Assembly (NCBI GenBank): GCA_001642005.1
Contig: LWCA01000110.1
Coordinates: forward strand, 1 to 53,215
Reading direction: 5' to 3'
From: Intoshia linei
Lineage: Eukaryota > Animalia > Orthonectida
Length of the DNA stretch: 53,215 nt
Position 1 is the first letter of the stretch. Each line of letters starts with the position of its first letter. Below, piece after piece: positions 50,901-53,215 of the stretch. The translations under genes were made by a program, and so were the position numbers. Below the pieces are notes generated by a model, which was given only the letters and a program-made list of their open reading frames with translations, searched no databases and was not told the origin of the DNA.

Positions 50901-51582
50901 TTGAATGGATATATGTTAATGATACATTTAGGTGCTAATTAGAGAAATTCCATTAATCAGCAAGTATTATAAATTAATAATTTTAATAAATTAAAACATA
51001 GTAAAGAATGGAGTTCACTTTTTGATAGAAATCAACAAAATATATTTAAAACTTTTGTGTACAATTTAATTATGCCATTTTTAAAACAATATTCGATAAG
51101 TATTTTACATTGTACCATGTAGTTTTACTTTTTAGATAACTGCGATGAAATTTACATTTATGATAAATTGATACATTTAAAGAAAAATGTAAAAGTCATA
51201 TTACTCTACAAAATGTCACACTCACCTACTCAATCGTGCGAAGAACTTAATTTCATCAATCTTACTACTTTCGAAAATTGTAATATCAAAATAATTATAA
51301 TTAATAAAATTCAGATTATGCGTACATGTACTACAATTCAACCTTTAAAATGTTTTGCAATACAAGTTACGATTATTACTTTTATGAGAAAGTTGCAAAG
51401 GTAAATTGAAATTCATATAAAAATGATAAACCATTCAGAAATCATATTCCCAGGAGTTGATCAAATTGAAAAATGATATTACAACAACGTGGAACCAATT
51501 CCAATGGATAAAACGTACACTAGAAAGCATAAACACCAAATACTCAAAACGATATAAATTTGAATTACAAGACAACATATAA
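44979..51582 (+). CDS. ANKFN1: Divergent ankyrin repeat and FN3 domain protein (ANKFN1/wide awake-like), multi-exon
   Basis: Ankyrin pair MFVSAIERDNV...INR|LTRFDLSLLDMALLLDHRQVIEILQENGA; later IYIYDKLIHLKKNVKVILL...FINLTTFE and TTWNQFQWIKRTLE resemble conserved ANKFN1 C-terminal blocks. The middle exons are only partly resolved. Confidence 0.65.
46579..46620 (-). mobile_element. Helitron 3'-end fragment
   Basis: Reverse complement GCTAGGATGCTGTTTGTAC-GAA-GTACATAACAG...CTTG matches the family 3' hairpin. Confidence 0.55.
49279..49458. repeat. ~39-bp imperfect inverted repeat (probable AT-rich MITE)
   Basis: TTTTTTAAATTCATTTCTAGCTAATTTATTTTGGTTTTT / AAAAACCAAAATAAATGAGCTAGAATTTAATTTAAAAAA. 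Confidence 0.6.
49485..50602 (+). mobile_element. Complete non-autonomous Helitron (1118 bp) in an ANKFN1-like intron
   Basis: 5' A^TC, early (TG)n tract, subterminal hairpin GCTGTTTGTAC..., 3' CTAG^T, no TSD; internal ~55-bp tandem duplication at about 50424-50531. Confidence 0.85.
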
Positions 51583-51647: not shown

Positions 51648-52797
51648 TTAAGCAGTTTTATACTTTTTTAAATTACCCTAAAAATTGACTTAAATCATCA
51701 AAATAAAATAAAAAACCATATAATGTCGTTTTTCAATCGAGGTTTGGAATCTACCGTGTCCGAATTTACTGCTTGTATCGATAAATTTCAAATTGACTTT
51801 TTCGAGTGCAGATGGAGTGACTGGGGGATTCAATGACTAAAAAATATGTTAAAAAATATCAAATTATAATGAAACTTTTCTCAAAGTTAAAACGCGTTTT
51901 CTACAACCCATTGTACATCCTTTCAGTAAAATGAAATCGTTTTTAACAACACCATAGTGTGGAAACCCACCCATCGGCGTTATTGATTTTTCAGTCAAAT
52001 CAAATTCTGTGGATGCATTGTTTGTATCAATTTTTCCATCAACGACTTTATATCCCTAAACATTAATGTGTTTTTGATTAAAAGAATAACCTGTCCGATT
52101 TTATAAATTTTTTTGTTTATTTCAGTTCTATGGTGGTATCCTTTTTGACCAGCTCTAGCAACAGAAAAAGCTACCCTAGATGGATGCCACGCACCAATAC
52201 AAGCCACCTTACGTAAACCTTTGTGAGTTTTTCTTGGCAACTTTGTGACGTGCCATCTGGAAACAACACCTTTAAATCCGTGGCCTTTTGTAACTCCGCA
52301 TAAATCAACCATTTCATTTTGTTGAAAAACTTGACCAACGTTCACATTGCGTTCCATCATTTTTCTAGCCCATTTTACCTTGTCAACAATTGTTCCTCCG
52401 TTTAATTGTACTTCCATTATGTTGTCCTTCTTTTGACGCAAACCAATCAATTTCATCTATAAATAAAATATACATTTAAATGGAGTGTTACCTGAGAGTG
52501 TGCAAGTACACGTATAACTGAACAGTATTTACTCAATTTATCATAATTATGTTCAACGTCGGATAAACCTTCAGGTGACTGATATTTTTTGGAATATTTA
52601 GAGTAAGATTTTTTCTTTGATTTCAACCAATTGCTATAAAATCTTCTCCTGCAACCATCACTTAAATGTTCAGCCATAATGGTTTTCATTGATTTTAAAC
52701 CATTTGGTGTTTCATAATAGCCAACTATACCAACAATTACCATTGGTGGAGTTTCTATTACTGTTACTGCTTCAACTGTTTCTTTTTTGTTCAATTC
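51648..52797 (-). CDS. RPL3: 60S ribosomal protein L3 (uL3), 3' exons; the 5' exons lie right of the window
   Basis: [16 protein letters not shown]...EVQLNGG...[13 protein letters not shown]...[20 protein letters not shown]...MGGFPHYG...[16 protein letters not shown]. Confidence 0.98.
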
Positions 52798-52966
52798 TAA
52801 ACGAATAATTAAGTATTGAATCCATTTAGAAAACAAAATGTTCATTTTCTATTAATCAGATTGGTTTTATTATCGTTCCATGTGCGACTCACCGTAGATA
52901 ATTAAATAAATAATTTTTAATAAAACTCAAACAGTCATTTCAATAAAAAATGTTCATTATTTACAA

Positions 52967-53017
52967 TAAAACGAAAGGTTCATGATTTTCAGAAACACGG
53001 ACCTTTAGTGTCATCAG
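52967..53017 (-). ncRNA. U18/SNORD18-like box C/D snoRNA copy with canonical guide spacing and a degenerate box D
   Basis: Minus strand cTGATGA-cactaaa-GGTCCGTGTTT-CTGA-aa-ATCATGA-acctttcgt-TTTA. The guide is antisense to conserved LSU rRNA GAAACACGGACC. Confidence 0.7.
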
Positions 53018-53062
53018 ATGCAAATAGGTATTAAAATTAAACAGAAATGTAAAAGAAAACAT

Positions 53063-53114
53063 TCAGATTAAAAAGTTCATTTTTAGACGAAACACAAATT
53101 TTAAATATCATATC
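53063..53114 (-). pseudogene. Decayed copy of the U18-like snoRNA
   Basis: gATATGA-tatttaaa-ATTTGTGTTTCGT-CTAA-aa-ATGA-actttttaat-CTGA; the guide and boxes C, D' and C' are mutated. Confidence 0.65.
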
Positions 53115-53150
53115 TAAGAAATTAATATCGAAAACTAAATTTCCTTACAA

Positions 53151-53204
53151 TCAGACGAAAAGTTCATCATTTTCAGACGAAACACGGACCTTAAATATCA
53201 TCAT
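53151..53204 (-). ncRNA. U18/SNORD18-like box C/D snoRNA with all four boxes perfect, in an RPL3 intron, sense to the host gene
   Basis: ATGATGA (C) tatttaa GGTCCGTGTTTC gt CTGA (D') aa ATGATGA (C') acttttcgt CTGA (D); 12-nt perfect complement to LSU rRNA GAAACACGGACC. Confidence 0.85.
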
Positions 53205-53215
53205 AACTAAAAACT

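Follow-up and report, generated by a model that had tools for sequence, protein, structure and literature searches.

The RPL3 gene of an orthonectid-like animal with a very small genome contains, in its second intron, a tandem array of U18-like box C/D snoRNA units; one of them, U7, has all four boxes at consensus together with three extra bases (CGT) in front of box D'. By the D/D'+5 rule, applied to the species' own 28S rRNA, these bases move the predicted site of 2'-O-methylation from A836, the nucleotide addressed by the canonical copies, to A833. We read U7 as a real retargeting, in which a U18 guide moved to A833, and give this reading slightly less than an even chance. U7 would descend from a duplicated U18 gene and encode a box C/D snoRNA, processed out of RPL3 intron 2, that functions now or did so until recently; the three nucleotides between the antisense element and D' would shift the fibrillarin "ruler" from A836 to A833, while the canonical job on A836 would fall to an intact C-type unit, U4, located in the same intron on contig C2396. 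Two U18 paralogues would thus cover both of the sites that humans cover with SNORD18 and SNORD126. The anatomy of U7, its host gene, its complementarity to the species' own 28S rRNA, its canonical partner and the lack of any other such guide in the genome were read directly from the assembly; expression, snoRNP assembly and methylation at A833 we infer, the last of these from the D/D'+5 rule.

Host intron and organization of the array

The window is a stretch of 53,215 nucleotides, corresponding to the whole of contig C1546 in a 41.6 Mb assembly. RPL3 was searched exon by exon: the Ribosomal_L3 match within exon 3 spans 52492-52794, and the following exon corresponds to profile positions 170-287. 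Exon 2 (Ribosomal_L3 positions 2-65) is found at the end of a second contig, at C2396:78273-78465, where it is followed by GTAATT and then by further U18 units as far as the last base of the contig. Because the genome contains one cytosolic RPL3 gene, split across C2396 and C1546, the ends of the two contigs are taken as the two halves of RPL3 intron 2; on this evidence, the assembly gap falls inside the U18 tandem array and the ends of C2396 (+) and C1546 (-) belong together. The joined region comprises window positions 52797-53215 and C2396:78273-79068 (Table 1).

The array is a higher-order repeat of the form C-A-B, with a period of about 256 bp and at least eight units in a single intron; further units may be present in the assembly gap. 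The final 110 bases of C2396, which span U5 and the beginning of U6, match the first 113 bases of the window's reverse complement at 94% identity; the two ends may represent neighbouring repeat units or two haplotypes, and U7 may be an allele of U5 instead of a fixed gene of its own.

Table 1. Features of the U18 array and of its host gene (window positions, unless contig C2396 is indicated)
Feature	Position	Strand	Description
RPL3 exon 3	52492..52796	-	Pfam Ribosomal_L3 profile positions 67-167, E=1.8e-39
RPL3 intron 2, 3' part	52797..53215	-	Phase-1 intron; runs off the contig end
U9	52967..53017	-	C-type unit, canonical spacing; C' TCATGA, box D changed to TTTA
U9 box D position, TTTA	52967-52970	-	
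U9 box C, CTGATGA	53011-53017	-	
U8	53063..53114	-	Decayed B-type unit; box C remnant only; C' with deletion; D' = CTAA
U7	53147..53209	-	Box-intact U18 paralogue, A-type, +3 spacing; Rfam SNORD18 and box check
U7 box C to box D	53204-53151	-	
U7 box C, ATGATGA	53198-53204	-	
U7 spacer TATTTAA		-	Between box C and 12-mer
U7 12-mer, GGTCCGTGTTTC	53179-53190	-	
U7 antisense element, GGTCCGTGTTTCGT	53177..53190	-	Pairs with 28S UGAAACACGGACC
U7 GT	53177-53178	-	After the 12-mer
U7 extra bases, CGT	53177..53179	-	From alignments; equally readable as GTC at 53176-53178
U7 box D', CTGA	53173-53176	-	
U7 AAA		-	Between D' and C'
U7 box C', TGATGA	53164-53169	-	
U7 spacer ACTTTTCGT		-	Between C' and D
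U7 box D, CTGA	53151-53154	-	
U1	C2396		C-type; box C destroyed, D' = CTAA
U2	C2396:78702-78760		A-type; box C ATGATAA; guide joined straight to TTTCGT+TTGA, D'-to-D interval deleted
U3	C2396		B-type; decayed, CGT present
U4	C2396		C-type; all boxes perfect, canonical spacing, 6-bp terminal stem
U4 box C, CTGATGA	C2396:78880-78886		
U4 guide	C2396:78894-78905		
U4 box D', CTGA	C2396		
U4 box C', TGATGA	C2396		
U4 box D, CTGA	C2396:78927-78930		
U5	C2396		A-type; canonical spacing; box C ATGATAA; C' TGATGC
U6	C2396		B-type; start only, at contig end

Three units, U7, U8 and U9, are located on the minus strand at the end of the window. In U7 the C, D', C' and D boxes are all perfect: the unit reads GTGTTTCGT followed by CTGA, and its internal boxes (CTGA, AAA, TGATGA at 53164-53176) are able to form a K-loop. 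The string TTTCGTCTGA occurs twice, at 53173-53182 and at 53151-53160. The unit is marked by the junction GUUUCGUCUGA and by the specific string GUUUCGUCUGAAAAUG, whose canonical-spacing counterpart is GUUUCUGAAAAUG, while GTTTCGTCTGA marks a +3-type unit. U8 reads TTTGTGTTTCGT+CTAA at 53083-53105; its guide has changed from GGTCC to AATTT, box C and C' contain deletions, and its CGT, which is kept, lies opposite that of U7 in the gap-affine pairwise alignment. U9 carries the 12-mer of U7 at 52992-53003, the final C of which is the first base of its D' CTGA (52989-52992); having lost box D, it is presumably dead.

All four boxes match the consensus in just two of the eight readable units, U4 and U7, and disabling lesions are present in the other six. 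The strings, the coordinates and the 3-nt difference given in the preliminary description all hold on the minus-strand reading of U7, U8 and U9, as does its remark that TTTCGTCTGA also precedes box D. It had used the copy at 52967 (U9) as the canonical-spacing copy of the window, which is presumably non-functional for want of box D; the search that it proposed for another intact canonical U18 in the genome led to U4 on C2396.

The two intact units are 51-54 nt long from box C to box D (53151-53204; C2396:78880-78930), with a 9-nt spacer before box D; they have no usable second guide, and their compactness is unusual among eukaryotic C/D snoRNAs. Just downstream of RPL3, at 51232-51298 on the minus strand of the window, there is a weak box C/D-like Rfam match to TtnuCD3 (20.8 bits, E=7.6) that includes an internal UGAUGA; it may mark a further small snoRNA or be meaningless.

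Target prediction on the 28S rRNA

According to the D/D'+5 rule, established knowledge that reportedly goes back to Kiss-Laszlo in 1996 and Cavaille in 1996, the methylated nucleotide is the one paired with the fifth guide nucleotide upstream of box D or D'. Contig C1 contains the SSU 3' end, the 5.8S and the LSU rRNA, and reads ...CCCGUCUUGAAACACGGACCAAGG; with LSU numbering from the Rfam-defined 5' end, GAAACA corresponds to G831 to A836, and A833 and A836 are bases 1824 and 1827 of the contig. We take A832 to correspond to the m1A645 site. Five guide nucleotides upstream of D', the rRNA partner is A836 (yeast A649, human A1326) in U4 and A833 (yeast A646, human A1323), that is GA[A]ACACGG, in U7. 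A836 is at D'+5 in U4, U5 and U9, and U7 is without the A649-equivalent spacing of the U18 family. The yeast equivalents are fixed by the DNAzyme arms that place A649 as GAAAC[A]CGG (PMC3938493). In human 28S rRNA, Am1326 (old numbering 1313) is assigned to SNORD18 (PMC5597630) and Am1323 (old numbering 1310) to SNORD126 (PMC9941101), methylation of A1323 being partial and variable (PMC9941101; see also PMC9226514). Thus, three points of the preliminary description hold up: its D'+5 arithmetic, now with the guides aligned to the species' own 28S rRNA, its yeast numbering relative to A649, and its statement that human A1323 is methylated with a different guide.

U7 and the 28S rRNA form 12 Watson-Crick pairs and one G·U pair at positions 2-14 from D', with a U·U mismatch at position 1. 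The inserted bases prolong the helix (C-G831, G·U830) and do not interrupt it; indeed, RNAduplex gives -23.2 kcal/mol for U7 versus -19.5 kcal/mol for canonical U4. Both the pairing with an extended helix and the four consensus boxes favour retargeting. The 9-nt spacer of U7 before box D has no complement longer than 7 nt in the rDNA contig, which is partial and covers the SSU 3' end, the 5.8S and about two thirds of the LSU model.

It is improbable that U7, although expressed, still guides A836 (perhaps the neighbouring nucleotide too) as a redundant U18, with the extra nucleotides looped out or the D' register shifted. What speaks for it is that two adjoining sites, A649 and C650, are attributed to yeast snR18, a sign of some register flexibility in the D' region of U18. 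DNAzyme names in PMC3938493 agree with this attribution. However, the inserted C and G complement the rRNA (C-G, G·U), so that a continuous helix to position 2 is favoured, and there is no alternative xUGA motif at the canonical distance. Classical spacing experiments, in which changed spacing reportedly moved the methylation site, also argue against such a redundant guide.

The CGT could also be an assembly or sequencing artefact of a collapsed repeat, as the array breaks the assembly and both contigs end inside it; this is very improbable, given that CGT is found in U7, U8 and U3 on two contigs, that U2 (C2396) is compatible with it, and that the neighbouring substitutions differ from unit to unit.

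Genome-wide and family searches

The 12-mer GGTCCGTGTTTC occurs eight times in 41.6 Mb, with six copies in the array, one antisense of the 28S gene and one stray, versus a single occurrence of the reversed control pattern; the match of the U7 guide to rRNA is therefore not a chance one. Searches of the 41.6 Mb with the 12-mer, with a 13-mer allowing one mismatch, with the RF00093 model and with BLAST of the array revealed no U18-type or SNORD126-type guide beyond C1546 and C2396; BLAST identified no copy of the array elsewhere in the genome. The genome encodes fibrillarin and an Rrp8-type (Methyltransf_8) methyltransferase. The lack of a separate SNORD126-like guide, together with the presence of these two enzymes, favours the retargeting of U7.

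Stray guide matches on C430 and C1893 lack C/D boxes and were ruled out as snoRNAs. The match at C430:10775-10787, CGAAACACGGACC, complements the U7 guide perfectly over 13 nt, inserted G included; it lies in AT-rich, apparently non-coding surroundings with no C/D boxes or obvious gene, and is probably due to chance. The string AGGTCAGTGTTTC is present at least 10 times on different contigs (e.g., C361:14494, C1055:15587, C1336:4027), far above the control pattern, and probably belongs to a dispersed repeat that has nothing to do with U18.

With Rfam at gathering thresholds nothing was found in the window, SNORD18 being recovered in E-value mode only. The SNORD18 (RF00093) scores are 25.7 bits for U7, 28.1 for U4 and 29.4 for U9, all below the gathering score of 41 bits, and the alignment of U7 prints "cgu" as an insert before D'. 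The array as a whole is so short and so diverged that the SNORD18 model does not suit it, and the position of all copies below the model's threshold weakens the case for retargeting. SNORD126 (RF01168) scores 19.8 bits on U7, below its gathering score of 55, with an alignment limited to box C and the antisense core.

Decay, possible selection and history of the units

Of the 14 flank and spacer sites in the 5' half, 8 distinguish U4 from U7, against 0 of the 16 alignable sites of box C and the 12-mer (one-sided Fisher p=5e-4 for constrained versus other 5' sites, with counts taken from the alignment). An unchanged box C and guide in a diverged 5' half hints at selection and favours retargeting. 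The 3' half of U7, spacer DNA included, shows 2 differences from U4 in 38 sites; since this near-identity extends to spacer DNA without a known role, the units are mosaics, and some of the conservation could be due to recent exchange.

B-type units have the 5' flank of U7, its TATTTAA spacer and its CGT in common, and their guide and boxes are eroded by G/C-to-A/T changes, showing the look of an unselected copy. The loss of guide and box G/C positions in units with the same CGT is a further point in favour of U7 as a retargeted guide. U3 and U8 share lesions, so that the B-type erosion predates the C-A-B amplification; likewise, CGT occurs in B-type units of both contigs that decayed long ago, so that it is older than the amplification of the three-unit repeat and is not a fresh event. 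The picture given in the preliminary description, of a guide in the act of gaining a new target, finds partial support. In the simplest history, the +3 form would have appeared early, the B-type copy would have been released from selection and decayed, and the A-type copy, now U7, would have been kept. In U5, canonical spacing comes together with the C-type CCTTTCG spacer, a combination that points to conversion from the adjacent U4.

As for the origin of CGT, box D, wherever a unit has kept it, is preceded by the string TTTC-GT-CTGA, and short conversion or slippage from the D context into the D' context (TTTC-TGA) would give exactly the observed change. Such exchange between D' and D contexts does happen in the array, as U2 shows: it is an internal deletion derivative such as recombination between the D' and D copies of the TTTCGTCTGA context in a +3 unit would leave behind. 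The earlier proposal that the insertion was copied within the gene thus gains support as a mechanism, short of proof, with the D context as a possible template.

The same array invites a reading in which U7 is a neutral by-product of tandem amplification, not yet decayed and forming little or no stable snoRNP, and in which the 3-nt indel arose by slippage or by short-tract conversion between TTTC..CTGA contexts and has no effect on rRNA; we regard this as appreciably probable, if below one half. Most units are dead, and an intact U7 may simply be at a stage before decay; U2 documents recombination between the D' and D contexts; and in a 3' half almost identical to U4 even in the spacer, intact boxes need no selection. 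In addition, the terminal stem is weak (-1.2 kcal/mol for the U7 flanks versus -4.1 for the 6-bp stem of U4), and U7 is possibly allelic with U5, whose C box is defective. The abundance of dead units, the mosaic 3' half, the stem and the possible allelism all weaken the retargeting reading; a good terminal stem can be dispensable for intronic snoRNAs. Against neutrality stand the perfect conservation of box C and guide within a deeply diverged 5' half, the contrast between U7 and the heavily decayed B-type units with the same CGT, and the survival of exactly one intact unit per spacing type.

Comparison with known systems

Intronic location in a gene of the translation machinery is shared by U7 and SNORD18/U18/yeast snR18 (RF00093), whose hosts are RPL4 in vertebrates and EFB1 in yeast; both have the guide at D' and the antisense element GGUCCGUGUUU against the universally conserved LSU GAAACACGGACC. 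Unlike SNORD18, U7 has three extra bases before D', which move the predicted site from the A649 to the A646 equivalent; it is very short (54 nt from box C to box D), it is hosted by RPL3, and it belongs to a tandem array. U7 is clearly homologous to the canonical U4, U5 and U9; since it and the canonical copies, with which it shows 83-94% identity, are units of one tandem repeat, it is best placed as a U18 derivative by descent, outside the defining spacing of the family. SNORD126 (RF01168) has the same predicted target nucleotide as U7, and its antisense core, GUCCGUGUUUC, overlaps; however, the alignment is confined to box C and this core, and U7 has the U18-type GGUCC and lies within a U18 array. 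If functional, U7 is thus to be seen as an independently arisen SNORD126 analogue, alike in geometry and outside the SNORD126 family.

Target migration by indel has been described in archaeal C/D sRNA families (Pyrobaculum sR56/sR57, sR127), where, as proposed for U7, gene duplication and an indel of 1-3 nt in or beside the guide shift the methylated nucleotide within the same rRNA region (PMC6009581). The archaeal cases rest on several species, whereas U7 belongs to a eukaryotic intronic array known from the sequence of one genome. The kind of event is therefore already known, and the A833-equivalent target is not new to biology.

How the rRNA methylation map shifts from lineage to lineage is for the most part deduced from comparisons of finished guides. 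Should U7 be functional, a parent guide, a retargeted daughter and several dead siblings would lie within about 1 kb, a single mutational step would be visible together with a plausible internal template (TTTCGTCTGA before box D), and the result would be convergence on a site served in vertebrates by an unrelated snoRNA; retargeting by indel would become directly testable in a eukaryote, as a neat example rather than a new principle. If U7 is non-functional, the locus would be an ordinary decaying snoRNA gene array, of value in explaining the assembly break and joining the two contigs. That this orthonectid-like animal independently built a SNORD126 analogue by a 3-base insertion in a duplicated U18, with selection keeping one intact copy per spacing type, is a tentative proposal whose chance we put somewhat short of even; if true, it would be a clean eukaryotic case of target migration by indel in which the ancestor, the derivative and the dead intermediates can all be seen together.

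Metagenome guides with the same geometry

A metagenome scan for TGATGA..GTCCGTGTTTC+NN+CTGA returned 12 loci. Five were rejected as snoRNAs, being GC-rich chance matches, while the other seven lie on AT-rich contigs (L023, L025/L027, L026, L029, L032, L034) and form part of complete C/D snoRNAs that have C' and D boxes and, in many cases, a terminal stem; some are multi-copy, with two copies on L025 and three in tandem on L034. None of the +3 snoRNAs has an Rfam match at gathering score or is recognisable as SNORD126; the guide region of the one on L032 resembles the SNORD126 consensus, and scores below the SNORD126 gathering threshold. As unrelated metagenome snoRNAs show the same +3 geometry, guides predicted for the A646 equivalent exist in several unrelated eukaryotes, and the site appears to be widely used. 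These seven credible guides and the methylation of the predicted site in human (Am1323) favour the retargeting of U7.

Like U7, the metagenome guides have GUCCGUGUUUC, 2 nt and CUGA downstream of box C, and the same predicted target. They differ from it in the bridging bases, which are A and then A, C or G; the first of these is Watson-Crick paired with an rRNA U that U7 meets by a G·U wobble. With its U18-type GGUCC and its place in a U18 array, U7, if functional, arose independently of the metagenome guides, which start with AGUCC or UGUCC; these have longer, unrelated second halves, and none of them adjoins a canonical U18.
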